IMG/VR virus record: IMGVR_UViG_3300042502_001233
Location: 1-64,000 of that record
Length of the DNA stretch: 64,000 bases
Direction: 5' to 3' (one strand)
The notes below the pieces were generated by a model. That model had not been told where the DNA came from and did not search any database. It was given only the letters and a program-made list of their open reading frames with translations. Position numbers and translations under genes: made by a program. Of the stretch, positions 1,330-37,921 are shown piece after piece (position 1 is the stretch's first letter; each line of letters begins with the position of its first letter).

Positions 1330-1537
1330 ATTTGCCTCGGTTTGTAACCGAGGGCTTTTTCCGTGACATATCTGCCCCAGAGATTTACGTCCTTGTGTTT
1401 GATACCACCGTCAGTACTAAGTTTCATTTATCTTTCGATAAAGAGGAGGAACTTCCATCTGACTATACCTCTCAAACACCCTACGATGGTTTTACTTTGC
1501 AAATATACTAACTATTTTTTTATGTTGCAAGTTTTTT

Positions 1538-4805: not shown

Positions 4806-5305
4806 TTAAACAGAACACCTTTTAATAATTTTTCTGTATATCCTATCTTCAAAATCTTTCATAAGAGAATCTGGTATCTTTATACCCTTGTTTTCAAATT
4901 CCTCAATGATTTCTCTTTTTAAGAAAGTACCTTCAGCAATCCCATCACCCCATTGGTCACACCACAAACCCCAACTCTTTTTCCCAACAATTACAGCCTT
5001 GACTATGTTGGGGTGTCTAGTTACTATGGGTTTACCACCTGAGTATTGCCCGTTATCAAATTTTCTAAATGTGTTTTTACCCTCAGATTCGTTTACATCA
5101 AACTCAACGTTGACAATTGAACCGCAGAAAGTTAATATTCCTTTCCTATAAGAATTAAGGAAAAAACTGAATATTTCATTGAAGTTATCAGAATATCTAG
5201 TTAGCTTTCTGTCTAAGCGGCCACCAGTTTCCTTTTTGCGTAATTCAATACGCTCTAATTTTGTTAGGCTCCCAAGCGGTCACCCCCATTATGTGTGTTT
5301 TTCAT
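4806..5305 (-). pseudogene. frameshifted hypothetical gene
   Basis: protein-like frames GSLTKLERIELRKK...IFSF and FLNSYRKG...KRCSV* joined by a shift in the T7 run (5161-5167); second shift near the start. Confidence 0.5.
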
Positions 5306-5320
5306 AACATTTATGTTTAG

Positions 5321-5393
5321 TTGAGTAAGAGGGTTTCGAACCCTACGCTACCACCCGTCTAGGTGGTCTTCTAACCAATTAAAGTATTACCCA
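5321..5393 (-). tRNA. degenerate tRNA, anticodon uncertain
   Basis: TGGGTAA/TTACTCA acceptor, D and T arms; anticodon loop not 7 nt. Confidence 0.45.
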
Positions 5394-5401
5394 AATTTTT
5401 G

Positions 5402-5474
5402 TGGAGCTGACGGGAGTTGAACCCGCATCCTCTACCGTGCAAGGGTAGCGCTCAGCCAGTTGAGCTACAGCCCC
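5402..5474 (-). tRNA. tRNA-Ala(TGC)
   Basis: cloverleaf, G3:U70, CTACC-CTTGCAC-GGTAG. Confidence 0.95.
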
Positions 5475-5660
5475 TTCCTATGGCGTTGATGCAACTTAAT
5501 AGATTCGTCAATCCATTAGCGGTTACACCAACTAACCATTTCTGTGCGGATATCAGTGGAATCGAACCACAACCTCTTCAGCGTCGAAGAATACTCTCAT
5601 TTAAAACCTATGGTTTACAACACATAAGTTTAACATAAATGATGGTGTGGCCACACCCCA

Positions 5661-6356
5661 TTATACTAATGATACCCATTTTCTTATAGCGTTATCGCTA
5701 ACACCGTATTTACGACCAGTTGCTGAATAACCTAATTCTTCTATTTCTTTTAACAAAACTTCTTTATCAGGTCTTTCAACTTTTCTTTGATTTATTGAAC
5801 TTAGAATTTGTTTATTTGTTTTACCACCATTTTTAGTTCTTTCTAGTATCAATAAATTTTTATTTTCTTTTATCTTATTATGTTTAATTTCATCTATTTT
5901 GTATTTTACAATATTTTTACCACCATGTGTATCTAATGTTGCGTTACAATTTGGACAAACAATTCTAAGATTTTCTAGTCTATTATCATTATGCGTCCCA
6001 TTTTTATGGTCTAATATCAATGACATTTTTTTACCCATCCATTCTTCACCTTGACCGCATAACTCACAACAACGTTGTTTTAACCCTTCATCATATAACT
6101 TGTTTTTTAGACTAGTTGTATGTATGTAGTTAGAATTTTCTATTAAAATTTCATCTAAAGTAAACTTACTTTTTATTTTAACTTTACTAGGTATATAAAA
6201 ATGGTCAATCTGTAAACCATATTCGTTAACATATTTTTTAATAGTGTCTCGGTTACCTTTACCAGTACCAATATTTAATTTTCTACATGCGTCAGTATAA
6301 TTAATACTATTTTTTATAATCTCACTAAAATACTGTTTTTCATATTTATTTTTCAT
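5661..6356 (-). CDS. HNH homing endonuclease
   Basis: CELC...LDHKNG...NLRIVCPNC. Confidence 0.85.
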   Translation of the reverse strand: MKNKYEKQYFSEIIKNSINYTDACRKLNIGTGKGNRDTIKKYVNEYGLQIDHFYIPSKVKIKSKFTLDEILIENSNYIHTTSLKNKLYDEGLKQRCCELCGQGEEWMGKKMSLILDHKNGTHNDNRLENLRIVCPNCNATLDTHGGKNIVKYKIDEIKHNKIKENKNLLILERTKNGGKTNKQILSSINQRKVERPDKEVLLKEIEELGYSATGRKYGVSDNAIRKWVSLV

Positions 6357-6423
6357 AATTTAACTTTTATATAAATATACATCTATATTTAAAAAAGTCA
6401 AGTGTTCGAACTAAATATTTTTG

Positions 6424-6495
6424 TAGCCCGTATGGGGTTCGAACCCATGCCTCCCGATAGAAAGTCGGACGTGTTAACCACTTCACTAACGGGCC
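6424..6495 (-). tRNA. tRNA-Glu(TTC)
   Basis: cloverleaf, TCCGA-CTTTCTA-TCGGG. Confidence 0.9.
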
Positions 6496-6502
6496 ATTTT
6501 TG

Positions 6503-6588
6503 CAGCTACAACGGGAGTCGAACCCGCTACGTGGATAAATCCACACTAGAGTGACAGTCTAGCACACCAACCGTTATGCGCTGTAGCT
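6503..6588 (-). tRNA. tRNA-Asp(GTC) with long variable arm
   Basis: CTAGA-CTGTCAC-TCTAG followed by hairpin GTGGA-TTTA-TCCAC. Confidence 0.85.
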
Positions 6589-6593
6589 ATTTT

Positions 6594-6668
6594 TGGCGGT
6601 CTATGAGGGAATCGAACCCTCATCACAAGCGTGACAAGCTTGCATCCTAGCCGTTGAACGAATAGACC
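6594..6668 (-). tRNA. tRNA-Asp(GTC)
   Basis: cloverleaf with encoded CCA. Confidence 0.93.
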
Positions 6669-6705
6669 ATTTAGATTTTTGATTACTGGAATCTTAACCA
6701 GATTG

Positions 6706-6780
6706 TAGCCCTGACGGGATTCGAACCCGCATTGCGCACCTTGAAAGGGTGGCTTCCTATTCCGTTTAGAAGACGGGGCC
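6706..6780 (-). tRNA. tRNA-Glu(TTC)
   Basis: cloverleaf, CCACC-CTTTCAA-GGTGC. Confidence 0.9.
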
Positions 6781-6786
6781 ATGTTG

Positions 6787-6859
6787 TGGGGACAGAGGGA
6801 GTCGAACCCTCGACACCTGACTCTTCAGGCCAGTGCTCTACCAACTGAGCTACATCCCC
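6787..6859 (-). tRNA. tRNA-Phe(GAA)
   Basis: canonical cloverleaf. Confidence 0.95.
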
Positions 6860-6869
6860 GATTATGTTG

Positions 6870-6940
6870 TGGAACCAACGGGAGTCGACCCCGTGTCTCT
6901 GCGCCTTCAACGCAGTGCTAAACCCCTCAGCTATGGAACC
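6870..6940 (-). tRNA. atypical tRNA-Phe(GAA)
   Basis: CTGCG-TTGAAGG-CGCAG; two U-U mismatches in acceptor; T-loop GTCGACT. Confidence 0.7.
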
Positions 6941-6960
6941 AATTTTTGCTTAATAAAAAA

Positions 6961-7359
6961 CTACATTTTTAAAACTTGATTATAAATTTCATCAATAGTT
7001 AACCCATTTTTATGTAAATTAACAATAAACTCAATATGTTCTTTAGATGTTAACTTAGGTCTCCTATTTTCTAAATTTTCTTTTCTTGTCACAACCCTTA
7101 GATTTATTAATCTATTATCGTCCTTATCTCGGTTAATATGGTCAACTTCTAAACCATCTAATTTATCAGTAATAAAAACTTCAGCTACTAATCTATAAAC
7201 ACTAAACTGATGTCTTTTTTCATCTATTTTTAATTTTATCCTATGATAACCTTTTTTATTTACAAATGGTTTTAAAATTCTATTCGTTAGAATATTTCTA
7301 ATTCTACCTAAATCTGAAATTTCATAAAATGTTTCTCTAAATTTTTTCCAATTTTCCAT
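6961..7359 (-). CDS. NUMOD4-HNH homing endonuclease
   Basis: ENWK..YEISDLGRIR; VDHINRDKDDNRLINL. Confidence 0.85.
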   Translation of the reverse strand: MENWKKFRETFYEISDLGRIRNILTNRILKPFVNKKGYHRIKLKIDEKRHQFSVYRLVAEVFITDKLDGLEVDHINRDKDDNRLINLRVVTRKENLENRRPKLTSKEHIEFIVNLHKNGLTIDEIYNQVLKM

Positions 7360-7373
7360 TTTAATTTTTTAAT

Positions 7374-7405
7374 AAAAAAAGCCTGACATTTTTACTGTCA
7401 GGCTT
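7374..7405 (-). terminator. attenuator terminator of Phe/Glu/Asp/Ala tRNA operon
   Basis: AAGCCTGACA-GTAAAAA-TGTCAGGCTT followed by U tract. Confidence 0.85.
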
Positions 7406-7430
7406 ATCATTTATATCGTTAATTTAAACG

Positions 7431-7520
7431 TTAACTTATGACAGTGTTTGACCTTCCGTAAGAGTAATCCTCCTCGGCTGCGAAAAATGCAAAATCAAAT
7501 ATGTTAGTTAAAGTTCTCAT
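7431..7520 (-). CDS. attenuator leader peptide MRTLTNIFDFAFFAAEEDYSYGRSNTVIS
   Basis: 29-aa ORF between promoter and terminator; 11 consecutive F/D/A/E codons; 3' ACTGTCA complementary to terminator 5' arm. Confidence 0.8.
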   Translation of the reverse strand: MRTLTNIFDFAFFAAEEDYSYGRSNTVIS

Positions 7521-7601
7521 TGTGTTTTCTTTTTGTATTTGTTTATAAATATGCGACTTTTTTTAAAAAGTCATTTTTTTTCTTTGTTTTTAATTATAGT
7601 G

Positions 7602-7633
7602 CAAAGATACGAACTGTTTTAATACATGTCAAG
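7602..7633 (-). promoter_or_regulatory. Bacteroidetes-type housekeeping promoter
   Basis: CTTGAC...TATCTTTG, matches the TAnnTTTG -7 element; same motif recurs upstream of many units. Confidence 0.7.
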
Positions 7634-7747
7634 TTTTTTTGCAACTTTTTTTTGAAATATTTTATATTTCGTTGTTTCTCAATTGATTAAGATAAGGTTT
7701 CATCTCATCTTTTTCTGTGTATTTGAATACTCAGCAAAACATATTTA

Positions 7748-8668
7748 TTATTTGTTGTTTGTTTTTTTAGACCAGTTTGTGTTAGTATCACCTTTTTTAA
7801 ATCCACCTAATGCACCACCTTTATTTATATTTAAAACTTCCCAACCTTCTAACTTTCTATCATCAATTCTTTTATTTTCAATCACACCTATTTGGTTTTC
7901 TGGATAAAATTTATCATCTTCAAACCACTCAAATTCTTCTTTTTTTTCCATTAAATCTCTAACAAACTTATTTGATGATTTGACCATGTGAGATTTTTTT
8001 CTTGTTGTTGGGTCAAAACTTAAACCGATATATATTTTTTTTACGTTATAAAACCTAATTTCATAAATTTTACGTTTACATTTATTACCAACAACCCTAA
8101 AATGTTTACCAACGTCATCTAATAAATTATATCTAACAGCATGACGATACGCTCTACGATATTTTTTTTGAAATTCCCATTTCGTTTCGCATTTTAACGC
8201 TAAATCTTTTACTTCATCATAAGACCAATAATGTTTTACATCCATATGACTAGTAATTTCATCATAAATTTTATGTCTAATAGCATAATCATAGGCGCCA
8301 GGTGCTTCTTTAATAAAATCATTTTTTTTATTATATTTTAAAGCTATTTTTTTCACACTATCGTGACACCATAAATTATTTCCTTTTAATAACGCATAAC
8401 ATTCATCTAAATAACCATGTTTTTTAGCAAATTGAAAAGCACCGCTTTTTCCATGGAAATCTTTTTTATAGTCACAACTTTTAACATATTCTATTAATAA
8501 TTCATATGTCCATTTAAATTTAGCTAAATCTCTGGTAATTTCATGATAAAAACCATGTCTTCTAGCATATTTAACCGCACCACTATATTTACGTTGAAAA
8601 TCATTTTTGGAATCACATTCTAATACCGCTAATCTGACGTTTGTTTCATTCCATCGTCTTTCTTTCAT
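7748..8668 (-). CDS. GIY-YIG-like homing endonuclease with N-terminal repeats
   Basis: 4 repeats W..E.V...A..C..K..F.K; C-terminal KIY..IYIGLS...R...H. Confidence 0.75.
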   Translation of the reverse strand: MKERRWNETNVRLAVLECDSKNDFQRKYSGAVKYARRHGFYHEITRDLAKFKWTYELLIEYVKSCDYKKDFHGKSGAFQFAKKHGYLDECYALLKGNNLWCHDSVKKIALKYNKKNDFIKEAPGAYDYAIRHKIYDEITSHMDVKHYWSYDEVKDLALKCETKWEFQKKYRRAYRHAVRYNLLDDVGKHFRVVGNKCKRKIYEIRFYNVKKIYIGLSFDPTTRKKSHMVKSSNKFVRDLMEKKEEFEWFEDDKFYPENQIGVIENKRIDDRKLEGWEVLNINKGGALGGFKKGDTNTNWSKKTNNK

Positions 8669-8686
8669 AAAAAACATTTTTTTTCG

Positions 8687-8769
8687 TACCGCTGGCGAGA
8701 CTCGAACTCGCACACCCTCACGGGCACCAGATTCTTAGTCTGGCGTGTCTACCATTCCACCACAGCGGC
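8687..8769 (-). tRNA. tRNA-Leu(AAG)
   Basis: CCAGA-CTAAGAA-TCTGG, class II variable arm. Confidence 0.9.
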
Positions 8770-8774
8770 AGGTA

Positions 8775-8863
8775 CAAGATAGTTAATTTTGTGGATTTGA
8801 ACCACTTCGTTCGCATTTTAAGTGTGAATTTTTAACCAGTTTTTGTTTGCTGAAACTATCTTT
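8775..8863 (-). ncRNA. Y-RNA-like/tRNA-mimic RNA (TTCAGCAA-stem family, copy 1)
   Basis: terminal stem AAGATAGTT/AACTATCTT enclosing TCAGCAAAC, an anticodon-like arm and T arm GTGG-TTCAAAT-CCAC. Confidence 0.5.
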
Positions 8864-8866
8864 TAG

Positions 8867-8949
8867 TACGGATAGTCGGACTCGAACCGACACTCATATT
8901 TCAGAACACGGGTCTAAGCCGTGTGTGTCTACCATTCCACCATATCCGC
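8867..8949 (-). tRNA. tRNA-Leu(TAG)
   Basis: CACGG-CTTAGAC-CCGTG. Confidence 0.9.
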
Positions 8950-8958
8950 AAATCTGAA

Positions 8959-9102
8959 TTAGATTTCTTCTAATTCAATATCTTCCAAGTTTTCTTGTTC
9001 TTTATTCTCTTTATTGGCACATGTAATATGCACAAATTTTTTGTCTACTAGTAAAGCAGCTCCGTGGATAATACCACCGCATTCGCAACAACTAAATTTC
9101 AT
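8959..9102 (-). CDS. small putative zinc-binding protein
   Basis: MKFSCCECGG...HITC, acidic tail, 47 aa. Confidence 0.5.
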   Translation of the reverse strand: MKFSCCECGGIIHGAALLVDKKFVHITCANKENKEQENLEDIELEEI

Positions 9103-9132
9103 ACTTCCATAATTTTAAATAACATGTTATTG

Positions 9133-9216
9133 TAGCCAGAGTGGGAATCGAACCCACACGTCCTTGCGGACACAAGATTTTGAGTCTTGCGCGTCTACCT
9201 GTTTCGCCATCTGGCC
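9133..9216 (-). tRNA. tRNA-Leu(CAA)
   Basis: CAAGA-CTCAAAA-TCTTG. Confidence 0.95.
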
Positions 9217-9285
9217 ATGATGTGATTGGCATTTTAACCATTGCATGAATTTAATCAAGTGTGAGTATACGCCTTTCACATTTTG

Positions 9286-9372
9286 TAGCTAGAGTGGGAC
9301 TCGAACCCACATGGACCTTTCGGTCCGCCAGATTTTAAGTCTGGTGCGTATACCTAATTCCGCCATCTAGCC
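9286..9372 (-). tRNA. tRNA-Leu(TAA)
   Basis: CCAGA-CTTAAAA-TCTGG. Confidence 0.95.
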
Positions 9373-9379
9373 ATTATTT

Positions 9380-9904
9380 TTAATTCATCTTCCTAATTGA
9401 ATGATGTCTTAATCTATGACAATTTGAACATAAAACGTCGCATTTATCAATCTCATTTTTTATTGTTTCCCATTTTTGAAATTTTATCTTATTAAAATTA
9501 GGGTCTTTCTCAGACGGGTTTAAGTGATGAAAATCAAAAATACAATAATTATTATCATTTAATTTTATTTTACAATCATTACATTCACCACCTTTATATT
9601 GAACCATTTTAATTTTAACGTTTTTAACTCTTTCCGAATGATAAATATTACTACATTTTTTGCAATAACCGTTATAATCATCTCTATTTGTACGTTTATA
9701 ATATTCGCTTAATGGTTTTAATTTTTGACATTTTGGACATAATTTATCAACAGATGATTTTTTGTTATGTTGATTAAGTTTAGTTTTTAATTCAAATTTT
9801 TTAAGCCAATATTTTACGTTACTTTGAGAACATTTTAATTCATCAGCAATTTCTCTTTGAGATTTACCTAGATTGATAAACTTTATTAATAAATCTTTTT
9901 CCAT
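9380..9904 (-). CDS. HNH endonuclease
   Basis: CPKC, FDFHH...LCSNCHRLRH. Confidence 0.8.
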   Translation of the reverse strand: MEKDLLIKFINLGKSQREIADELKCSQSNVKYWLKKFELKTKLNQHNKKSSVDKLCPKCQKLKPLSEYYKRTNRDDYNGYCKKCSNIYHSERVKNVKIKMVQYKGGECNDCKIKLNDNNYCIFDFHHLNPSEKDPNFNKIKFQKWETIKNEIDKCDVLCSNCHRLRHHSIRKMN

Positions 9905-9967
9905 TTGTGTTTTATATTAAAAATAACTCACTTTTGAAAAAAGTAAATATTAACCAGTGATTTATTG

Positions 9968-10053
9968 TAGGGCTAGCTGGACTCGAACCAGCGTTATACT
10001 TCTCGTCTCCATCTTGTAAGGATGGGATGTTTAACCAACTACACCATAGCCCC
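9968..10053 (-). tRNA. tRNA-Val(TAC) with long variable region
   Basis: CCATC-CTTACAA-GATGG plus 16-nt variable region. Confidence 0.85.
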
Positions 10054-10067
10054 GTTTTTGGTAGGTT

Positions 10068-10367
10068 TTAACCTACCTTGATGAAGTCTTCGTTTTCAAT
10101 GGCTCTTTCAATCCATCTAATCAATTCAGACCCTTTGATTTCAGCATCGAATGTGGTTGTACCCAAGTCCTCAGCCAAAACAAGTGTTGGAATTTTTTCA
10201 ATTTCTCTAGTGTCCATCACATATGATTTTTGAACCGTTTTGATTGGAAATTGATAAGTTCCGTCTAATACTTCAACTTTATAATATAGGTTCCCACCTA
10301 CATAGTGGCTAAATCTAGCCAGATTCTTTGACTTATATAAGTCTTTTTTGATTTCATTTTTTTCCAT
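10068..10367 (-). CDS. hypothetical protein
   Basis: ORF, start reassigned to MEKNEIKK outside tRNA-Cys. Confidence 0.7.
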   Translation of the reverse strand: MEKNEIKKDLYKSKNLARFSHYVGGNLYYKVEVLDGTYQFPIKTVQKSYVMDTREIEKIPTLVLAEDLGTTTFDAEIKGSELIRWIERAIENEDFIKVG

Positions 10368-10388
10368 CGCTTCCTTCTTTATCATTAG

Positions 10389-10459
10389 AGGCGCCGACTG
10401 GATTCGAACCAGTGTACGGGGATTTGCAGTCCCCTGCCTAGCCACTCGGCCACAGCGCC
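10389..10459 (-). tRNA. tRNA-Cys(GCA)
   Basis: canonical, U73. Confidence 0.95.
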
Positions 10460-10471
10460 ATTGTTATCAAT

Positions 10472-10500
10472 AAAAAAACCCATCTGGTTAGGATGGGCTT
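10472..10500 (-). terminator. attenuator terminator of Cys/Val/Leu tRNA operon
   Basis: AAGCCCATC-CTAACCA-GATGGGTTT-TTTT, 12 nt before tRNA-Cys. Confidence 0.85.
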
Positions 10501-10528
10501 TTTGAGAGAGATACTTATCTTATTCAGA

Positions 10529-10612
10529 TTAGTTAACACACAAGAAGCCCAGCTGTGTTTCCACAAGCAAGCATAAGCTTAAAAGGACTAATATGTTAAA
10601 AGTATTTCTCAT
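10529..10612 (-). CDS. attenuator leader peptide MRNTFNILVLLSLCLLVETQLGFLCVN
   Basis: 27-aa ORF rich in L/V/C; TGGGCTT complementary to terminator 5' arm AAGCCCA. Confidence 0.8.
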   Translation of the reverse strand: MRNTFNILVLLSLCLLVETQLGFLCVN

Positions 10613-10653
10613 TTTGTTTTTTTGTTTTCTGTAAGTTAAACTTTGATACAGTG

Positions 10654-10685
10654 CAAATATACTAACTATTTTAATACAAGTCAAG
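10654..10685 (-). promoter_or_regulatory. Bacteroidetes-type promoter
   Basis: CTTGAC...TATATTTG. Confidence 0.7.
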
Positions 10686-10731
10686 TGTTTTGCAATTTTT
10701 TTTATAATAAATATGTAATTTTTTAAAAAAG

Positions 10732-11313
10732 TTATTTTTTTGACCAATCTTTTTTAGATTGTCTAGCAGCTGCTTTTGATATACCACAACTAGTTGCTTT
10801 AAAACTAGGGCCTTGCATTCCATCTAATGCAACATCATCTTGCTTGTTTTGGTTTTTAATATACTTTTGATATTTTTTTAAATTTATTTTTAATTTGGTA
10901 CCATCTTCTAACTCTCTATAGATAATATCTGGCATTTCAAAAGATGTTCCATCTAAATAATCAGCTTCTTGAGCCATAGTTGTATTACAACTTGATTTAA
11001 ACTCTTCTTCGTCTACGACTTCAACAAAGTTTCTAATGTACGCCCCTTTTATAAAATTTTCATAATTCTTTTTACGTTGAGCTTCTCTTTTTTCTTTGGC
11101 AGCAGCTCTTTGTTCTGGTGTACCAAACATTGGTTTTTGAGTTGTTGTTTGAGTTGTTGGTTCAGTCGTTGTTGGTTGAGTTGTTTGACCTTGCGCACCC
11201 AACGTACCAAGCGTCATTGCGGCACCAGCCGCTAAGCCTTTCCAATTAACTTCGTTTAATTGTTCTTCTTCTAATAAAGATTCTCTAAGTTTTTGTTTTA
11301 TAAACGTTTTCAT
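10732..11313 (-). CDS. hypothetical protein, possibly virion-associated
   Basis: N-terminal MKTFIKQKLRE motif, T/Q/P-rich linker. Confidence 0.7.
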   Translation of the reverse strand: MKTFIKQKLRESLLEEEQLNEVNWKGLAAGAAMTLGTLGAQGQTTQPTTTEPTTQTTTQKPMFGTPEQRAAAKEKREAQRKKNYENFIKGAYIRNFVEVVDEEEFKSSCNTTMAQEADYLDGTSFEMPDIIYRELEDGTKLKINLKKYQKYIKNQNKQDDVALDGMQGPSFKATSCGISKAAARQSKKDWSKK

Positions 11314-11335
11314 CAATATTTTTATTATAAATATC

Positions 11336-12099: not shown

Positions 12100-12136
12100 T
12101 TTTCACAAATCGATATATTTATAATAAATTAAACAC

Positions 12137-17965: not shown

Positions 17966-18006
17966 AATATTCTTTTATTATAAATATCACGGTTTTGGTA
18001 AAAACT

Positions 18007-18509: not shown

Positions 18510-19798
18510 TAGTGTTCCATTTGTATTAAATGAGAAATTGTACATTGTACTGGATTGTAAATGATAAACTCATCATTTCTCAAGTCAGCACCACCGTGAG
18601 CGTATACGCTATCAAAACCATCCTTTTGGATGTTAGAGTAACTCAAACTATAGCATGATGAATCATGTTTATGAATGTGTTTCTCGTTCCCTAAATGTAC
18701 ATCGAACAATGCCAAGAAACCTATTTGAGAATTCCCTCTAGTCCAATGAGAACCTGATAGAGAACTATACCCTAGCGATTTTTGGCTCTTGTTTGCAAAA
18801 TATACACCATCACCGAACATTGAACCAGTATACACCGCGCCAGAAGGTCTAATCATAAGACCAGTCTGAATAATGTTAAACCAGTTCTCGTTACGCGAAC
18901 CATGCCAGTAAAGTCTTTTCTTTTTAACTTTGGCAGTTTTAAAGTGAGCATCAAACTTAGCTTGTGTAGCCAAGTTAACCACTTTGAAAATCTTTTTAGC
19001 TTTGTTGGCGTTATCACCCAATAATTTGGTGATAAGGTTAAGAGTTTCACTGTCTTTTTCAACTTCAACTTTAAGACCCATTTGAGTAAGAATGTCAATG
19101 TCTGACATTTCTTCACCAGTGGTTTCAACAGTTTGTTTTTGTTGTTTGATAAGTTTAACCTGACCAGACATCGTATCTAACGCGCTTTGTTCTTCACCCA
19201 ACAACCTTTGTGCTTTTTCTAATTCAACATCGTCACCCAACCCTTGAACCAAATGGTTTTTAACGTTGTCCATCTTTCTTGGGATGATTGTGTAAAGCTT
19301 CAACAACTCGTTGTTAACGTCTTTAAGGTCACCACCAACTTTCAACATAGCAGTTACTCTTGATAACACTTCTTGAGCCGATTCCACTTGTTGTTCAGAA
19401 ACTGCATCTTGTGTTACTTTGTAGTTTTTCTGGATAGACTTATTCGCGTATGCCATAAGGTCTTGGACCAATTTCTTAACCATTGCGTCTTTGATTGCTT
19501 CAACGGTATTGTTTTTTGATGCACCGTTTGAATCATCAACAACTGGTTCAGCTAACAATTCAGTTACGTCAGTGTAACCTTTGGTTGATGACGTTTTTTC
19601 GCGTAAGATTTTATCCCACTCGTTTTTACTTTTAAACACAGTAGCCATGTTTTTACCCACTCTACCATACTCACATTTTATTCTACCATCTGAAAGTTCT
19701 TCCATGATGTAGACTTTGTTGCTATTGTCTGTTTTACCATTGTCTACCGACACGTGAATCAGTTTAGCATATCTTAACCCGTTTTCTTTTGTAACCAT
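18509..19798 (-). CDS. PARP-like ADP-ribosyltransferase (WGR + regulatory + catalytic)
   Basis: YGRVG; LYTIIP; YWHGSR, GSMFGDGVYFA, KSLGY, NDEFIIY (H-Y-E triad). Confidence 0.9.
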   Translation of the reverse strand: MVTKENGLRYAKLIHVSVDNGKTDNSNKVYIMEELSDGRIKCEYGRVGKNMATVFKSKNEWDKILREKTSSTKGYTDVTELLAEPVVDDSNGASKNNTVEAIKDAMVKKLVQDLMAYANKSIQKNYKVTQDAVSEQQVESAQEVLSRVTAMLKVGGDLKDVNNELLKLYTIIPRKMDNVKNHLVQGLGDDVELEKAQRLLGEEQSALDTMSGQVKLIKQQKQTVETTGEEMSDIDILTQMGLKVEVEKDSETLNLITKLLGDNANKAKKIFKVVNLATQAKFDAHFKTAKVKKKRLYWHGSRNENWFNIIQTGLMIRPSGAVYTGSMFGDGVYFANKSQKSLGYSSLSGSHWTRGNSQIGFLALFDVHLGNEKHIHKHDSSCYSLSYSNIQKDGFDSVYAHGGADLRNDEFIIYNPVQCTISHLIQMEH

Positions 19799-20444: not shown

Positions 20445-21521
20445 TTATGACAACCCAACTTTTTCGTTTAATCTTTGGGAGAAAAACTTTTTAGAAATTT
20501 CAGAAACATATTTACCAATATCCTTTATTTCTAACCCTTCATCGCTAATAGTTTGAAGCTCTTCTTTTACTATGTCATTCATAACTGATTTTATATATTT
20601 ACCAGTATCTTTAACATCGAAAGTACCACCATTTAACGTGTCAAATGTTTCATTAAGCATTTGTTCAAGTCTCCAAGCTGGGGTGATTTTTTCAGCTAAG
20701 TCTATGCATTTTTGTACCCTCGCATCATCAACTGGTTTGAGTGTTTTAACTTTTGAAACACCAGCGTGTTTCTCACCTTTAGATTTGAAAAAGATTCTAA
20801 CACCATTTTCATCTAAATTTGAAAAAACAATCCCTTCACCTACAGTATTTGGAAAACCAAAGTGTTTAGCCACTGGACATTCGTCTTCAACACTTAAAGT
20901 CATTTCAATCATTTTGTTTTGACTAAGTTCAGGTCTATTAAAATCAATTTCAATTTCATATGTTTGAAAATCTAACATATTGTAAATTCTTTTTTCGTTA
21001 TCCCTGAAACCTGAATAATCGACCCAATAAGCTGGGTTGTTTTTTAATTCTTCTTCATTTTCTACGATAGGTGAAATCTTTATACCATAGATAAACACCG
21101 ATTTTTCAATATTGGTAATACCAACACCTTTTTGAATATTAGAACCAGCCCACTCTGAATAAACACCAATTGTGTTATTATCCAAATCGATACCGTATTT
21201 ATCAGCTATTTCGTTGATGATTCTCAACCAAGATTCTTTTGTTGATTCTGCAAAAAAAGCAAAACCAGCATTGTCGGATTGAGGGGTGATGATATTACCT
21301 CTACTCTGACACCACATACCTGATTTGTTATTAAACAAAACACCAGCTGAAGTACCGTGTAGTTTAACAGTACCAATAAATTTAATAATTGGTTTTGGTT
21401 TAGATGGGTCGTAAATAGGCTCACCATTTTCATCTAAACCACAGAAGTTATGTTTTCTGTTTACATCACTAACAACCTCTCTAAATTGAGGGGTTGATGG
21501 GTATTTTACCATTTTTTTCAT
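20445..21521 (-). CDS. RNA ligase, Rnl2 family
   Basis: KLHGT motif I, GEGIV, FKSK. Confidence 0.8.
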   Translation of the reverse strand: MKKMVKYPSTPQFREVVSDVNRKHNFCGLDENGEPIYDPSKPKPIIKFIGTVKLHGTSAGVLFNNKSGMWCQSRGNIITPQSDNAGFAFFAESTKESWLRIINEIADKYGIDLDNNTIGVYSEWAGSNIQKGVGITNIEKSVFIYGIKISPIVENEEELKNNPAYWVDYSGFRDNEKRIYNMLDFQTYEIEIDFNRPELSQNKMIEMTLSVEDECPVAKHFGFPNTVGEGIVFSNLDENGVRIFFKSKGEKHAGVSKVKTLKPVDDARVQKCIDLAEKITPAWRLEQMLNETFDTLNGGTFDVKDTGKYIKSVMNDIVKEELQTISDEGLEIKDIGKYVSEISKKFFSQRLNEKVGLS

Positions 21522-26719: not shown

Positions 26720-26776
26720 AACTTTTTTTTATTATAAATATCTAGAAATATTAGAAAAGTTAGATTAGTATCAAAT

Positions 26777-31313: not shown

Positions 31314-32252
31314 TTAGGACCCCTTTTTTATTTCAGTTACTATACCTTTAATAGCAAAGTTTTTTATTTTTTGCCATTTGGTGATGTTGTTTGACATCAC
31401 TGGTTTACCACCATCTGGATTTATTGCAATCGTAATGTGTGGTATTGCATTGGCTGATGGATAACCTTCTACTTTGACCGCCATGGCCATATCGCTAAGA
31501 CCTATGGCTTCAACATACAACGTTACCTCTTTACCTAAGTCTTCTTTGTTTGGAACACCTTTACCGAATACAATTGTCATGTGGTGAGCAAATACTTTCC
31601 AACCTTCTGGGATATAATCATCAAGTCTAGATAACAACGCTGCTTTAGAACCATTATCCAATACAACAGCTGAATATAACACATCAGATTCTTTGTACAT
31701 GTCTTTAGACTCCAAAACACTTTTCAATGTTAGCAATCCTTGACCTTTGTGAGATTCAATCAATGATTGAATTTTTTCCAATGGTACACCGTGAGTATTT
31801 CTCTCAGCAAGTATTTCCGCTGGTAACCCGTTGGTACCTATATCAACAAATTTTATGTTGTTATCAGACAAACCTAATTCTAACGCTGCTTTCACATACG
31901 CTTTGGATTCGTTTTGTTTGATGTTCGTGTTATCCACAATAACTGGTGATAATCCTTCTTTCAAAGATTTTATCGCATTTTTCAAGTTTGTTGAGTGCGC
32001 TCTTGACAATGGTGTGAAATCTTTCGACTCAAACATTGCTGCAAAGAATTTGTTGTAATCACCTTGTGACTCAATAACATCGTCTGTGGAGTGTATGATA
32101 CCTTCACCTACTAGTTCTTTAGCTTTTGTGGATTTACCAGAACCTGGTATACCGCGCATAACTATCAGTTCTTGTGTTGGTCTTGTAACTACAACACCCA
32201 ACGCATTTTTTTTCATGTCTTCTCTTAATATTGTTCTTATTTCTTTTTTCAT
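31314..32252 (-). CDS. polynucleotide kinase-like P-loop + 2H cyclic phosphodiesterase (RNA end healing)
   Basis: GIPGSGKS, VDNTN, RNTHGVP; HHMT and HIT motifs. Confidence 0.8.
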   Translation of the reverse strand: MKKEIRTILREDMKKNALGVVVTRPTQELIVMRGIPGSGKSTKAKELVGEGIIHSTDDVIESQGDYNKFFAAMFESKDFTPLSRAHSTNLKNAIKSLKEGLSPVIVDNTNIKQNESKAYVKAALELGLSDNNIKFVDIGTNGLPAEILAERNTHGVPLEKIQSLIESHKGQGLLTLKSVLESKDMYKESDVLYSAVVLDNGSKAALLSRLDDYIPEGWKVFAHHMTIVFGKGVPNKEDLGKEVTLYVEAIGLSDMAMAVKVEGYPSANAIPHITIAINPDGGKPVMSNNITKWQKIKNFAIKGIVTEIKKGS

Positions 32253-33999: not shown

Positions 34000-34039
34000 A
34001 TTTTCTTTTTATATAAATATCATGATTCAAGGGAAAATC

Positions 34040-34127
34040 TGGAGGAGAATATGGGATTCGAACCCATGGGCCGAACTAACGGCCACGGTTTAGCAAACCG
34101 CTCCAATAACCACTCTGGCAATTCTCC
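34040..34127 (-). tRNA. tRNA-Ser(GCT)
   Basis: class II cloverleaf with CCA. Confidence 0.93.
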
Positions 34128-34134
34128 AAATTTG

Positions 34135-34170
34135 TACCCCTACAGGGACTCGAACCCCGATTCTAGCCTT
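34135..34170 (-). pseudogene. orphan 3' half of a tRNA
   Basis: GGCTAG-AAT-CGGGG-TTCGAGT-CCCTG-TAGGGGT-A directly after the HNH stop codon; no 5' half. Confidence 0.7.
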
Positions 34171-34771
34171 AATTTTTGTAATTTTTTAAATATCGGTCTT
34201 TTCTAGCTGAGTTTTTATTTTTAGATTTATATGTATCTAATTGTGAATCACAATTATGACATATTAACCTTAAATTATTTCTCATATTATTAGACGCATT
34301 TCCGTTAATATGGTCTAAAATAAAATTCATAGGTTTACCATTCCAAACATTTTTAATATTACATATATCACATTCACAATTTTGTTCTATTAATATATGT
34401 TTTTTCAATGGTGCTAAATCTTTATTAGCGTTACAAAAATCTTCTTGATTACTCAAATAATTTTTATAGTATTCTTCAGTTTTATGTTTTACCCAACATT
34501 CTTTATTACAATATAATTGTTTATCATAAGAAGTGTTAACTTCTTTACCACAACACAAACAATTTATTTTCTTACCCTTACCAGTGTTAACTGGTTTGAA
34601 ATTTTCACCAAATTTTGCTCTGATTGGTAATTCAATTCCTAATCGTTTACATACTTTTTTTATATATGTATCAGAAACACCGTATTTTTCACCAATTTTT
34701 CTATAAGAAATTTTTTGAACAAAAATTAAATCTTCTAGGTCTACTTTTTTATATTTTTCATTATAATCCAT
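34169..34771 (-). CDS. HNH homing endonuclease
   Basis: LDHINGN...NLRLICHNC. Confidence 0.85.
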   Translation of the reverse strand: MDYNEKYKKVDLEDLIFVQKISYRKIGEKYGVSDTYIKKVCKRLGIELPIRAKFGENFKPVNTGKGKKINCLCCGKEVNTSYDKQLYCNKECWVKHKTEEYYKNYLSNQEDFCNANKDLAPLKKHILIEQNCECDICNIKNVWNGKPMNFILDHINGNASNNMRNNLRLICHNCDSQLDTYKSKNKNSARKDRYLKNYKN

Positions 34772-34849
34772 AATATTTTTTTATTATAAATATAATGAAT
34801 TCGAACCAAAAGTCAACTATTTTTAAATTTAATTTTATGTTCAGATTTG

Positions 34850-34922
34850 TGACCTTATCGGGATTCGAACCCAAACGACAAATTTAGAAGATTTGTATGC
34901 TAATCCGTTACATCATAAGGCC
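34850..34922 (-). tRNA. tRNA-Arg(TCT)
   Basis: CAAAT-CTTCTAA-ATTTG. Confidence 0.88.
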
Positions 34923-34940
34923 AGTTATTATTTAATGTTG

Positions 34941-35014
34941 TGGCTCCGACAGGGCTCGAACCTGTGACCCACAGATTAGAAATCTGTTGCTCTGTCCATC
35001 TGAGCTACGGAGCC
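34941..35014 (-). tRNA. tRNA-Arg(TCT)
   Basis: ACAGA-TTTCTAA-TCTGT. Confidence 0.93.
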
Positions 35015-35021
35015 AATTTTT

Positions 35022-35098
35022 TGGTGACCACGGTAGGATTCGAACCTACAACCTCCGCAGTCGTAATGCGGTGCGCTATCCAGTTGCGCCACGTGGCC
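35022..35098 (-). tRNA. tRNA-Arg(ACG)
   Basis: CCGCA-TTACGAC-TGCGG, CCA. Confidence 0.93.
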
Positions 35099-35104
35099 AG
35101 TATT

Positions 35105-35177
35105 TGGTACCGAGTATGGGAGTCGAACCCATGTATTCATCTTTATGAGGGATGAACGTTTTCCTATAACCCTCGGC
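35105..35177 (-). tRNA. atypical tRNA with CAT anticodon (Met/Ile2)
   Basis: short D arm, extended anticodon stem TTCATC/GATGAA, CCA. Confidence 0.65.
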
Positions 35178-35183
35178 ATTTTG

Positions 35184-35257
35184 CGGCCTCGACAGGATTC
35201 GAACCTGTAACCCTTGAGTTAACAACTCACCGCTCTAACCATTATAGCTACGAGGCC
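35184..35257 (-). tRNA. tRNA-Asn(GTT)
   Basis: cloverleaf, G73. Confidence 0.9.
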
Positions 35258-35264
35258 TTTTTTT

Positions 35265-35340
35265 TGGCGGCCTAGGTAGGATTCGAACCTACACGCCTCA
35301 CCTTAACAGGGTGCCGCTCTACCGTTGGAGCTACTAGGCC
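35265..35340 (-). tRNA. tRNA-Asn(GTT)
   Basis: cloverleaf, CCA. Confidence 0.92.
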
Positions 35341-35446
35341 AATTTTATATTTTTATCAATACACCGAGTACCACAATTACGGTGCGCCTCTGGCCTACTC
35401 GCCAGCAATGCTGTTTTTACCCGTGGTTACACCATTTGATAGGGTG

Positions 35447-35520
35447 TGGTCCCCTCGGGACTCGAACCCGAAACCGTCGCGTTATGAGCGCGCTGCGCTA
35501 ACCAATTGCGCCAGAGGACC
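35447..35520 (-). tRNA. tRNA-CAT (Ile2 or elongator Met)
   Basis: GCGCG-CTCATAA-CGCGA. Confidence 0.88.
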
Positions 35521-35763
35521 TTATTTACGTTTTTCAACAAGATAGTTAATGTAATCTTCGTAGCCATCATCATCATCATCATCATCATCATAATCATCAT
35601 CTTCTGGTTCAAAGTCTTCATCTAACATTTTATCCAGAACTTCAAAAGCTATTTTCATTACTTCGTTTTCTTTACCCTTTAATTGTGGGTTAGGAAGCAA
35701 AATGAACAATCCAACTATGGCTTCTACCAATCCTTTTTCATTTTCACTATATTGTCTTTTCAT
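35521..35763 (-). CDS. acidic hypothetical protein
   Basis: poly-Asp encoded by GAT repeat. Confidence 0.6.
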   Translation of the reverse strand: MKRQYSENEKGLVEAIVGLFILLPNPQLKGKENEVMKIAFEVLDKMLDEDFEPEDDDYDDDDDDDDGYEDYINYLVEKRK

Positions 35764-35765
35764 AG

Positions 35766-35849
35766 TTGTGACGGTGGGGCTCGAACCCACATTGTGTTAT
35801 AAACACCCAGCGTATCAGGCTGGTGACTAAACCATTCATCCACATCACA
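35766..35849 (-). tRNA. tRNA-Ile(GAT) with long variable arm
   Basis: CCAGC-CTGATAC-GCTGG + GTGTT-TAT-AACAC hairpin. Confidence 0.8.
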
Positions 35850-35856
35850 GTTTTCG

Positions 35857-35930
35857 TGGGTAACACGGGAGTCGAACCCATAACCTCTCGCGTATCAGGC
35901 GAGTGCTCTAACCAGTTGAGCTAGCTACCC
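35857..35930 (-). tRNA. tRNA-Ile(GAT)
   Basis: canonical. Confidence 0.93.
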
Positions 35931-35938
35931 ATTATTTG

Positions 35939-36011
35939 CACGGACCAAGAGAATCGAACTCTTTCCATTCGAGGTTTTGGAGACCTGATGCATGCCATTA
36001 TGCTGGCCCGT
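35939..36011 (-). tRNA. tRNA-Trp(CCA), slightly atypical
   Basis: AGGT-CTCCAAA-ACCT, G73. Confidence 0.8.
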
Positions 36012-36019
36012 ATTTAATT

Positions 36020-36113
36020 TATCACCAAAGGATTCGAACCTTTACACCCTTCTCGGGTTACCGTTTTCACTACAGCAGTCAGTACCCAGTTTACTCTTTT
36101 GACTCACGTGATA
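36020..36113 (-). tRNA. degenerate tRNA-Ser(TGA)-like
   Basis: acceptor, long variable arm, T arm; enlarged D loop, G33. Confidence 0.45.
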
Positions 36114-36120
36114 AATTTAG

Positions 36121-36207
36121 GGTGAAAAGACGGGACTCGAACCCGCAAGGACATTTCTGTCATCTGGCTCACAACCAGACTCGCTACCGTTACGTACTAC
36201 AATCACC
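36121..36207 (-). tRNA. tRNA-His(GTG) with long variable arm
   Basis: TCTGG-TTGTGAG-CCAGA + GACA-GAAA-TGTC; imperfect acceptor. Confidence 0.75.
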
Positions 36208-36216
36208 ATGTATTTC

Positions 36217-36849
36217 TTATACTCGACCTAATCTCCAATTATCTGGAATTAAATCATCTTTTTTAATCTTTTTATTTTCACTACCATTTGTTACCCATCG
36301 ACTACCAAATTGTGAATTTGTTTCACCAACACCAGTACCTTTTTTTACTTTAGACATTAATTGTTTAGATTCATGACTATGGGTTTCACCTTCCCAATTT
36401 TTAATCCAATTTTTATCTCTAGTACCAGTTAAATATTCTAGTGTTCTAGCTGTTGATATTTTATTACTTTTCTTTTCTACCCATTCTGGGTCTTGTCTTA
36501 AAAGCTTTTGTTTTTCGTTTGATTTAATCGCATTCAATTTTTGTTGTTCCGAGCTAAACCCACCAGTACCACCTTCTCTAAGATTCATACACATAGGGTT
36601 TTCCACCAACTCTTTAGTAACAATTTCAATCTCTCTAAGAACCATTTCTTCTCTTGTAGGTAAAAATTCAAGTATTTCTTTTGTATGGTTTTCCACACCA
36701 TGTTTTCTAATTGAATACCTAAGTCTTTTACCACTCCCCATATAACCATCTTCCAGGTTATATGCACTATGCATTCCTACATAATATCTTCCCGTTACAT
36801 TACATGTTGTTTTATATATGTAATGTATGTTTCTTTGTTTTCTTGCCAT
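36217..36849 (-). CDS. GIY-YIG (Seg-like) homing endonuclease
   Basis: YIYKTT..YYVGMH..DGYMGSG; paralog of 57153..57812. Confidence 0.88.
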   Translation of the reverse strand: MARKQRNIHYIYKTTCNVTGRYYVGMHSAYNLEDGYMGSGKRLRYSIRKHGVENHTKEILEFLPTREEMVLREIEIVTKELVENPMCMNLREGGTGGFSSEQQKLNAIKSNEKQKLLRQDPEWVEKKSNKISTARTLEYLTGTRDKNWIKNWEGETHSHESKQLMSKVKKGTGVGETNSQFGSRWVTNGSENKKIKKDDLIPDNWRLGRV

Positions 36850-36908
36850 TTCTCTTTCTTTCTAAATAAATATCTTAAGAAAGAGAAAAGTACAAAAAAG
36901 TTTAAGAG

Positions 36909-36983
36909 GGTGGTATATCGGGTTCGAACCGATGACCCTCGACACCACAAGCCGATGCTCTAACCAACTGAGCTAATACCACC
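36909..36983 (-). tRNA. tRNA-His(GTG)
   Basis: canonical, G-1:C73. Confidence 0.93.
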
Positions 36984-37076
36984 ATGTTTAATTTACATTC
37001 ACCGCATTTTTGCGGCGATTATCACCGTTAACTTTAAAAATTATAAACTATGCGGTGATAATATTGTCTATTCGCC

Positions 37077-37511
37077 TTATTTTTGCGGTGAATATTTTTC
37101 TATATAATTTATTAAATTATTCAAATAATTAATATCTTCTTTTACATTACCCAACAATTTATTACATTTGTCACATAAAATATCTCTAACAACACCAGTT
37201 AAATGACAATGGTCCACATGTGTGTTTTTATCATTTTTTAGAACATCACTACAGATAGAACATTTATTATCTTGTTTATCTAATTTTAAAAAATATTCTT
37301 CTTTTGTAAGACCATAATTTCTTAAAATTGAATTATATTTTATTTTTTCTTTCTGAATAGGGTTTTGATATCTAATCTTAGTCCTATTATTTTCACACTC
37401 TTTACAATAATGATTTAAACCATCTTTATTATAATTCTTAATACCAAATAAATCAATACTTTTTACTTCTTGACATTTGGAACATCTTTTTACGTTCGTA
37501 TTTATTTCCAT
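37077..37511 (-). CDS. endonuclease VII-like HNH protein
   Basis: YGLT...QDNKCSIC..VDHCH..G.VR.ILC..CN. Confidence 0.85.
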   Translation of the reverse strand: MEINTNVKRCSKCQEVKSIDLFGIKNYNKDGLNHYCKECENNRTKIRYQNPIQKEKIKYNSILRNYGLTKEEYFLKLDKQDNKCSICSDVLKNDKNTHVDHCHLTGVVRDILCDKCNKLLGNVKEDINYLNNLINYIEKYSPQK

Positions 37512-37580
37512 ACTAATAAATATCTAACATTTTGTAAAAGTGCGGATAATTTTTAATATTCACCGCATTTGTAAACTTTG

Positions 37581-37668
37581 CGGAGATAGTAGGATTCGAA
37601 CCCACAAGCCGTTTCCGACCACAGTTTTCAAGACCGCCAAGCTTAGTCCACACTGCTCTTATTCTTCC
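37581..37668 (-). tRNA. tRNA-Ser(TGA)
   Basis: GCGGT-CTTGAAA-ACTGT, long variable arm, G73. Confidence 0.8.
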
Positions 37669-37861: not shown

Positions 37862-37896
37862 AAAAAAACCCGATTAAGTTTTCACTCATCGGGTTG
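37862..37896 (-). terminator. attenuator terminator of Ser/His/Trp/Ile/Met/Asn/Arg tRNA operon
   Basis: AACCCGAT-GAG...CTTA-ATCGGGTT + U tract. Confidence 0.85.
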
Positions 37897-37921
37897 TATA
37901 TTGTTATCTTTTGAATTCTTA

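Follow-up and report, generated by a model that had tools for sequence, protein, structure and literature searches.

Textbooks describe leader-peptide attenuation as a control of amino-acid biosynthesis and of one synthetase operon. In the trp, his, leu, thr and ilvGMEDA attenuators, a short open reading frame (ORF) close to the promoter carries a run of regulatory codons, four segments of the transcript can pair in alternative ways (1:2, 2:3 and 3:4), and an intrinsic terminator lies before the genes; leaders that serve several amino acids have precedents in ilv (Leu, Val and Ile) and thr (Thr and Ile). Here, we describe a locus of the same design, unit A, in bases 1–64,000 (hereafter, the window) of the 362-kb phage contig IMGVR_UViG_3300042502_001233, which comes from lake-water metagenomes. 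Judging from its sequence, unit A is quite likely to be a ribosome-mediated leader-peptide transcription attenuator that gates a phage transfer RNA (tRNA) operon: its 29-codon leader and switchable terminator would probably turn the tRNA block on only when ribosomes are short of those tRNAs. Unit A has every sequence-testable defining feature of leader-peptide attenuators, and its anatomy, the codon-to-tRNA match, the codon-level conservation and the 1:2, 2:3 and 3:4 co-variation were computed directly.

The use of leader-peptide attenuation before tRNA genes appears undescribed, since a full-text literature search gave no report of such attenuators there, either in phages or in cells. Unlike the enterobacterial operon attenuators, which control biosynthetic enzymes and sense the amino acid through charging, the phage units would regulate the tRNAs that decode the control codons, with up to nine species per leader. 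The nearest functional precedent is the pheST attenuator of E. coli, in which the Phe-rich pheM leader controls a translation component for the same amino acid; it differs from the phage units in being chromosomal, in sensing one amino acid only and in having a synthetase, not tRNA genes, as its target. T-box riboswitches also sense tRNA status and choose between terminator and antiterminator upstream of translation-related genes, but they make direct contact with a single uncharged tRNA by means of their specifier codon and T-box sequence, no translation being involved, whereas the phage units vary codon-wise. No T-box match was found in Rfam at E ≤ 10 in 7300–7700, nor at the gathering score in the window, where only tRNAs and transfer-messenger RNA (tmRNA) were detected; at E ≤ 10, the region 7300–7700 gave only sub-threshold, terminator-driven matches. 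The units also have no sequence or Rfam relation to known leaders (Thr_leader, RF00506, 21.3 bits, and Phe_leader, RF01859, 16.6 bits, against a gathering score of 55 bits).

In Bacteroidetes, the presumed host phylum, the Bacteroid-trp motif has reportedly been read as a Trp-codon attenuator. It is a candidate cis-regulatory leader upstream of trp genes (RF01692; PMC2864571) and thus a precedent for such control in this phylum, with another sequence and other target genes, and it has no Rfam match in the window. The arrays themselves resemble those of T4, mycobacteriophages and huge phages (PMC7162821) in combining tRNA clusters with homing endonucleases, tRNA repair and CCA-adding enzymes. 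No dedicated regulatory leader is described for these arrays in the literature searched, and the terms 'attenuat', 'leader' and 'terminator' do not occur in the huge-phage paper (PMC7162821).

Anatomy of unit A

All features of unit A lie on the minus strand:

7599–7643, minus strand: promoter, with TTGACA at 7632–7627 and the −7 box TATCTTTG at 7609–7602; a 45-nucleotide (nt) motif common to units B and C
7539–7552, minus strand: ATATTTATAAACAA box in the 5' untranslated region, 19 nt before the leader ATG
7431–7520, minus strand: leader ORF A, ATG at 7520–7518 and TAA at 7433–7431, 29 codons plus TAA, peptide MRTLTNIFDFAFFAAEEDYSYGRSNTVIS
7467–7499, minus strand: control codons 8–18, TTT GAT TTT GCA TTT TTC GCA GCC GAG GAG GAT (FDFAFFAAEED)
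7449–7454, minus strand: AGGTCA, codons 23–24 of the leader, at the position homologous to the antiterminator strand of relatives
7439–7445, minus strand: ACTGTCA, codons 26–28, the predicted antiterminator strand of this genome, pairing with TGACAGT at 7400–7394
7374–7405, minus strand: intrinsic terminator A, 5' arm AAGCCTGACA at 7405–7396, loop GTAAAAA at 7395–7389, 3' arm TGTCAGGCTT at 7388–7379, T-run (T7) at 7380–7374
6961–7359, minus strand: homing endonuclease ORF with NUMOD4 and HNH_3 domains (Pfam E = 2e-11 and 1.5e-10), between terminator A and the first tRNA
6423–6940, minus strand: tRNAs Phe(gaa), Phe(gaa), Glu(ttc), Asp(gtc), Asp(gtc) and Glu(ttc), found by both ARAGORN and Rfam
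5661–6356, minus strand: HNH ORF ahead of tRNA-Ala, found by domain search
5401–5474, minus strand: tRNA-Ala(tgc) of array A
5320–5393, minus strand: odd tRNA with an 8-nt anticodon loop, 3' of tRNA-Ala

An earlier note on this DNA had placed a leader at 7520–7431 with 11 consecutive F, D, A and E codons, in front of Phe, Phe, Glu, Asp, Asp, Glu and Ala tRNAs, and had pointed out that ACTGTCA (7445–7439) is complementary to TGACAGT (7400–7394) in the terminator; on re-checking, its coordinates, its codons, the order of the array and this complementarity were all confirmed.

The 45-nt promoter motif has three matches in the window against none expected in the motif search, and behind each copy come a short ORF, a terminator and an array of tRNA genes; it also occurs 5' of the leaders in 14 viral-contig loci, while a loosened pattern returned mostly chance matches. 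We take TATCTTTG to be a Bacteroidetes −7 box (TAnnTTTG), an assignment of promoter type based on the published consensus. Between the promoter and the leader ORF, the untranslated region is A-rich. Terminator A folds into a 10-base-pair (bp) stem (−15.8 kcal/mol, z = −5.6) and outranks every other terminator-like site on the minus strand of the first 12 kb. The NUMOD4/HNH ORF that follows it is specific to this genome, being absent in five relatives (L005, L007, L148, L149 and L150), and in relatives tRNA-Phe begins about 20 nt past the T-run.

For every control codon from 8 to 18, the array that follows encodes a tRNA species able to read it (anticodons gaa, gtc, tgc and ttc). With F, D, A and E making up 22% of the residues in the long ORFs of the window, an 11-codon run of this kind has P = 6e-8 per position; since the window also has no longer run of this kind in any of its six frames, chance is excluded as the origin of the run in unit A.

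Leader codons and the tRNAs that read them

The contig holds four paralogous units, A–D, of which A, B and C are inside the window and D is outside it. The parts of units B and C are as follows:

10472–10695, minus strand: unit B, promoter at 10695–10651, leader at 10612–10529 (MRNTFNILVLLSLCLLVETQLGFLCVN), control codons at 10591–10562
10472–10551, minus strand: switch parts of unit B, predicted antiterminator strand TGGGCTT at 10551–10545, terminator at 10503–10472
8686–10459, minus strand: array B, tRNAs Cys(gca), Val(tac), Leu(taa), Leu(caa), Leu(tag) and Leu(aag), with inserted ORFs
37862–38098, minus strand: unit C, promoter at 38098–38054, leader at 38020–37922 (MRTINIHMISISNWRRNSHQVSGMSNCDIIEF), control codons at 38011–37964
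37862–37957, minus strand: switch parts of unit C, predicted antiterminator strand TCGGGT at 37957–37952, terminator at 37895–37862
34040–37850, minus strand: array C, starting with a conserved ORF of 63 amino acids (aa) at 37850–37659, then a divergent tRNA-Ser(tga) at about 37664–37582

The remaining tRNAs of array C are His, His, Trp, Ile, Ile, Met, Asn, Asn, Arg(acg), two Arg(tct) and Ser(gct), with inserted Endonuclease VII, GIY-YIG and HNH genes. The leader of unit D, MTTTTTYQTQYQPKGGKPFKVTGYVKLLDLTTI, precedes Pro, Gln, Lys, Gly, Tyr and Thr tRNAs.

Each of the 20 amino acids is assigned to one of the four leaders: F, D, A and E in A; L, V and C in B; I, N, H, M, S, W and R in C; and T, Y, Q, P, K and G in D. 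When codons 8–17 of leaders A–D are counted against the four tRNA sets, the result is 10/0/0/0, 0/9/1/0, 0/0/10/0 and 0/0/0/10, i.e., 39 of the 40 codons fall in the set of their own array, and the sole exception is a Ser codon in B, which counts for set C. From this 4 × 4 matrix, the joint probability of the match in composition is about 1e-23. The match extends to isoacceptors: over nine units, 52 of 56 anticodon species can be read in codons 2–20 of their own leader, against 33 of 138 when non-cognate leaders from that genome are taken instead. Leader B has four types of Leu codon (TTA, TTG, CTT and CTG) before an array with four Leu tRNAs; leader C has AGA and CGC for Arg and TCG and AGT for Ser; and leader D has GGC and GGG for Gly.

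AT-rich DNA holds many small ORFs, so the leaders could be small peptides or chance ORFs, with the hairpin just ending a short transcript and the tRNAs expressed from elsewhere. This explanation, already disfavoured by the joint probability given above, is in our estimate very improbable: the ORF co-varies with its terminator, arrays A, B and C contain no other consensus promoter, and the design is repeated, with other amino-acid sets, in unrelated huge phages.

Relatives of the units were retrieved in three ways: with DNA patterns combining the promoter and degenerate codons, through the 63-aa ORF behind unit C (a route blind to the leader sequence), and by a scan of metagenomes. Among GenBank phages, blastn with 5000–11000 gave tRNA similarity only and no close cultured relative. 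Leader ORF A is kept in eight distinct A-family variants from IMG/VR contigs, and C-type leaders are kept as an ORF in more than 60 cases; in dozens of relatives the control residues are retained through synonymous changes. In the A family, control codons 8–18 show seven synonymous and no non-synonymous variant codons over the eight variants, and at the 11 positions after the control run the amino acid changes at 10. In the C family, Ser12 alternates between TCG and AGC or AGT, with all three bases differing, and six of the seven non-synonymous variants in codons 4–18 remain in the C set (I to N, N to I and M to I). Such synonymous or in-set variation fits a constraint on the decoding tRNA at each position, and not one on an RNA motif or on the peptide.

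The same variation bears on a sensor made of RNA alone, T-box-like or protein-binding, which would recognise uncharged tRNA or another factor without translation and for which the codons would be an RNA motif. The full leader is indeed structured (−36.7 kcal/mol, z = −3.7), but we give such a sensor scant probability: control-run variation, including the Ser switches from TCG to AGC or AGT, is synonymous or in-set, a search at E = 10 brought up neither the T-box nor any other Rfam family, apart from the sub-threshold terminator hits, and a single RNA could not specify four to nine different tRNAs by pairing.

Units of this design are widespread. In the metagenome scan, C-type leaders appeared at 72 loci from lakes, sediments and one TARA marine sample, with 53 distinct peptide sequences among them. 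Where downstream DNA is available, His, Trp, Ser, Ile, Met, Asn and Arg tRNAs come next in most loci, and a few arrays differ or add species. Analogous leaders with other amino-acid groupings, each matching its own array, are present in published huge-phage genomes of 595–735 kb (PMC7162821):

LR756501.1 (735 kb), leader 1: MLQTSKHSKHFSSSSKWF... / SKHSKHFSSSSKWF, precedes Trp, His, Phe, Lys and Ser tRNAs
LR756501.1, leader 2: MNNILHINLLNSLCLLGIKLIG, with six different Leu codons, precedes five Leu tRNAs, Leu(tag, gag, caa, taa)
LR756501.1, leader 3: MKNMVRKYNDYCINDKLKMLIG (YNDYCIND), precedes a bL12 gene, then Ile, Cys, Asp, Asn and Tyr tRNAs
LR756501.1, leader 4: MNFRIINMIQEQMQQIQNLIGG... (MIQEQMQQIQ), precedes Met, Gln(ttg), Gln(ctg), Ile(tat) and Glu tRNAs
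LR756511.1, leader with a GTG start: ...SASLRLSSYSLSSLLYS... (SLRLSSYSLSSLLYS), precedes four Ser isoacceptors, Leu and Tyr tRNAs

All four units of LR756501.1 have a terminator and, near the end of the ORF, an 8–9-bp complement to its 5' arm. The leader of LR756511.1 uses the Ser codons TCT, TCC, TCA, TCG, AGC and AGT, and its sole antiterminator candidate is a 5-bp hairpin, CGGGT/ACCCG, just upstream of the terminator. Phe is grouped with D, A and E in the window phage and with W, H, K and S in LR756501, and Cys with L and V in the former and with I, D, N and Y in the latter; these regroupings indicate that the leader changes when the composition of the array changes.

Several minor observations concern these units. 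The 63-aa ORF (37659–37850, minus strand) has no Pfam or PHROG match and is located 3' of the terminator of unit C, both in the window and, with 49–100% identity, in 16 of 18 related loci (L127–L145); by its position, it would be co-regulated with array C. In LR756501, the bL12 homologue occupies the equivalent place. The tRNA-Ser(tga) that follows the ORF (37582–37664, minus strand) is detected only at a relaxed ARAGORN threshold and is a normal tRNA in relatives; it may be decaying here, though leader C still has two TCG codons. A suppressor-type tRNA with anticodon cta is found at 44350–44423 (minus strand), and no ORFs of the window merge when TAG is taken as sense. Leader C (stop at 37922–37924) and the D leaders of L010 and L125 end in TAG with an in-frame TAA directly after it, and would thus still stop under TAG suppression. 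In relatives, a tRNA with anticodon tca occurs within array A.

The predicted RNA switch

In the model that we propose, host RNA polymerase would initiate at the unit A promoter and a ribosome would translate the 29-codon leader. With charged tRNA-Phe, -Asp, -Ala and -Glu in ample supply, the ribosome would pass codons 8–18 and reach the stop; there it would cover the distal part of the ORF, or the distal part would re-pair with the proximal part (1:2), so that the terminator (3:4) forms and no tRNA is transcribed. If any of these tRNAs were scarce, the ribosome would stall in the control run and mask segment 1, and the distal ORF (segment 2), left free, could pair with the 5' arm of the terminator (2:3) before the 3' arm is made, with read-through into the array. 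In the absence of leader translation, 1:2 and 3:4 would both form and transcription would terminate. We infer the translation of the leader, the stalling, the direction of the switch and the physiological signal; the pairings that the model needs can be computed.

The folds were constrained by ending the transcript before the 3' arm of the terminator and by masking 30 nt under a ribosome with its A site on codons 9–12. Under these constraints, the distal ORF pairs with the 5' arm of the terminator in all nine units tested. In the same truncated folds without the ribosome, the proximal ORF pairs with the distal ORF in B, D and one C variant, and this 1:2 pairing (the anti-antiterminator) is present in minimum-energy folds; in the untranslated fold of unit A, AGGTCA (7449–7454) pairs with control codons F8–F10.

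A terminator was found in all units of the family. Terminator sequences differ widely across units and relatives, and the distal ORF stays complementary. In the A family, the pairs of antiterminator and 5' arm are GTGGTCGG/CCGACCAC, GGTCGA/TCGACC, GGGTCG/TGACCC and AGGTCA/TGACCT, with ACTGTCA/TGACAGT in the window, and those of the C family include TCGGGT/ACCCGA, CAGGT/ACCTG, GGTCAAGG/CCTTGACC and GAATTCGG/CCGAATTC. Complementary strings can also be kept in different reading frames: GGGCTT is retained in another frame in one relative of the B family, and GUAUGU, involved in 1:2 pairing, is kept in two frames in the C family.

For an alignment-free test, we compared duplex energies between each distal ORF and either the 5' arm of that unit (cognate) or the arms of other units (swapped), and treated the 1:2 pairing in the same way:

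2:3 pairing, units A–D: cognate −195.2 kcal/mol; permuted −135.9 ± 8.9 kcal/mol (mean ± standard deviation); 15 classes; cognate value reached in 0 of 200,000 permutations
2:3 pairing, C-family metagenome units: cognate −323.0 kcal/mol; permuted −235.4 ± 12.6 kcal/mol; 25 classes; 0 of 200,000
1:2 pairing, codons 2–10 against the distal ORF: cognate −526.6 kcal/mol; permuted −438.2 ± 12.8 kcal/mol; 46 classes; 0 of 100,000

In all four families, the antiterminator strand begins 8–13 nt past the last control codon (codons 19–22), with unit A of the window as the exception. Placing the antiterminator at codons 26–28, as the earlier note did, therefore holds for this genome and not for the A-family relatives, all of which have the strand at codons 22–24, the position of AGGTCA here. 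Unit A of the window has a changed terminator loop, and a second GTCA-containing copy, at codons 26–28, gives the best pairing. Because its stop codon is only 5 nt past ACTGTCA, a terminating ribosome would cover that strand. The general proposal of the note, a translated leader whose antiterminator competes for the 5' arm with the ribosome position deciding the outcome, gains support from the synonymous variation, the co-varying terminators, units B–D and the other huge phages. Its suggestion that the trailing YSYG of leader A is a trace of lost or degenerate Tyr and Gly tRNAs does not hold, since Tyr and Gly tRNAs stand behind leader D on the same contig, these positions vary freely in relatives (YSYG, YSFG, FTLG, CSKG and CSSG) as part of the RNA switch region, and the tRNA near 5321–5393, where a degenerate copy had been suspected, has an anticodon loop of 8 nt with AGAC and recurs, conserved, in a relative.

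As the direction of the switch is inferred, one can also consider the reverse polarity, in which stalling favours termination and the arrays are off when their tRNAs are scarce. We find this hardly credible: a ribosome on codons 9–12 frees the strand complementary to the 5' arm in every folded unit, a ribosome at the stop is compatible with 1:2 and 3:4, and positive feedback on scarcity would be maladaptive.

A number of observations weigh against the attenuation model. In the codons, these are the out-of-set codons 2–7 of leaders A and B, the Ser codon of leader B, the extra Thr, Tyr or Pro tRNAs that some C arrays of relatives hold and that are not mirrored in the leader, and the odd tRNA at 5393–5320, which has no obvious codon in leader A. 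Nor is the design universal: no recognisable leader was found at one LR756504 array or at the 63-aa-ORF loci L140 and L142. In the RNA, full-length minimum-energy folds always retain the terminator, with or without a masked ribosome, so that the switch must be kinetic, as in the trp operon. The antiterminator of unit A is the weakest in the A family (7 bp, −9.9 kcal/mol) and is at a non-homologous position, and the isolated antiterminator segment folds with z = −1.2. In units C and D, 27–30 nt separate the antiterminator strand from the stop codon 3' of it, too far for a terminating ribosome to cover the strand, so that termination there would rely on 1:2 pairing. A column-wise count of pairs in a MAFFT alignment gave a modest result (80% of cells paired, four pairs changed on both sides, matched in 9 of 500 shuffles), which we attribute to the mis-registration of the most divergent terminators in that alignment. 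Finally, coupling of transcription and translation in Bacteroidetes hosts is an assumption of the model.

The signal and the surroundings of the arrays

Since the tRNA products decode the control codons, the proposed circuit is one of negative feedback on tRNA supply: supply would be matched to demand, with the species of one array combined by OR-logic. The regulated products would be the very molecules that read the sensor, giving direct feedback on tRNA availability with isoacceptor resolution, and the isoacceptor-level match argues for tRNA availability, rather than amino-acid supply, as the selected signal.

The same mechanism could instead respond to amino-acid or charging status, with the leaders timing the array and the co-transcribed genes (the 63-aa ORF and bL12) to starvation or to a stage of infection, and not to tRNA supply. 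Attenuators sense charged tRNA, and a missing amino acid is thus indistinguishable from a missing tRNA, as established for trp, his and pheST; moreover, some units do co-transcribe protein genes. We nevertheless regard an amino-acid signal as rather unlikely, because extra tRNA gives no relief from amino-acid starvation, a match at the level of isoacceptors (four types of Leu codon, and both Arg, Ser and Gly species) would be pointless, and in most relatives the first tRNA lies directly 3' of the terminator.

If sensing of tRNA availability is correct, phage tRNA arrays would be inducible rather than constitutive. Codon usage, host shut-off and escape from tRNA-targeting defences are candidate answers to why large phages carry near-complete tRNA sets. 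Tentatively, and with somewhat less than even probability, we suggest that Bacteroidetes huge phages run a demand-driven tRNA network, in which the full complement is split into leader-gated operons and deployed only in response to the depletion or cleavage of particular host tRNAs, for example after host shut-off or by an anticodon-nuclease defence; the leaders would then be counter-defence sensors alongside the tRNA-repair genes of the surrounding island. Each unit would also be a compact, portable sensor of about 270 nt, with a specificity legible from the sequence, and a possible part for synthetic biology.

The island consists of genes for the maintenance of tRNA and translation around the arrays, all on the minus strand (18512–19798, 20448–21521, 31317–32252, 39611–40801, 58850–59227 and 61284–62300). 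It comprises a PARP-like protein, an RNA ligase, a kinase plus tRNA-ligase-CPD-like protein, a CCA-adding enzyme, tmRNA and DnaJ; with the CCA-adding enzyme and the RNA ligase as queries against GenBank phages, tblastn gave identities of at most 36–42%. In T4, Pnk and Rnl1 act against PrrC, and by analogy the island genes point to tRNA damage or depletion as a selective pressure.

Homing-endonuclease genes (HNH, GIY-YIG and Endonuclease VII) are found in the arrays at 6961–7359, 5661–6356, 7748–8713, 9380–9904, 34169–34771, 36217–36849 and 37077–37511, all on the minus strand. The order and copy number of the tRNAs vary between close relatives, which suggests endonuclease-driven shuffling.

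The motif ATATTTATAA(A/T)(C/A)AA has 21 matches with at most two mismatches, against 7.4 expected, mostly 2–10 nt before ORF starts; the matches include 7539–7552 (19 nt before the ATG of leader A), 11321–11334, 17974–17987, 26728–26741, 34007–34020 and 34780–34793 on the minus strand and 12115–12128 on the plus strand. The ATATTTATAAACAA box also stands before the A, C and D leaders of relatives, and a similar box, AATATATAAAACAAAG, before the leaders of LR756501. The ATATTTATAA motif probably serves as a phage-specific promoter or as an initiation signal, and the leaders may accordingly have two promoters.

The odd tRNA at 5320–5393 (minus strand) has the loop cuAGACgg, is below the Rfam tRNA threshold and is conserved in the relative L147; it may be a quadruplet or frameshift decoder. 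A further tRNA with an 8-nt anticodon loop, with ttcg, is found in L014.

In array C, a 79-aa ORF (35521–35760, minus strand) whose acidic tail is DDDYDDDDDDDDGYEDY separates tRNA-Ile from tRNA-Met and runs exactly up to the tRNA. A poly-ATG run before tRNA-Met (at about 35600) was considered as a Met leader and rejected, because it is the poly-Asp tail of this ORF in another frame and no terminator comes after it.

Elsewhere, a consensus promoter at about 1530–1498 is followed by a 13-codon ORF (1417–1458, minus strand), MEVPPLYRKINET, with CCT CCT, and then by a GC-rich hairpin without a T-run, tRNA-Pro(agg) at 1252–1329, about 220 nt of GC-richer sequence and tRNA-Phe. Contigs recovered from RNA runs are all of low depth; in two wastewater metatranscriptome runs, contigs join 6497 exactly to 6670 and omit both Asp tRNAs of array A; this junction could reflect a variant genome without the Asp duplication or recombination between repeats.

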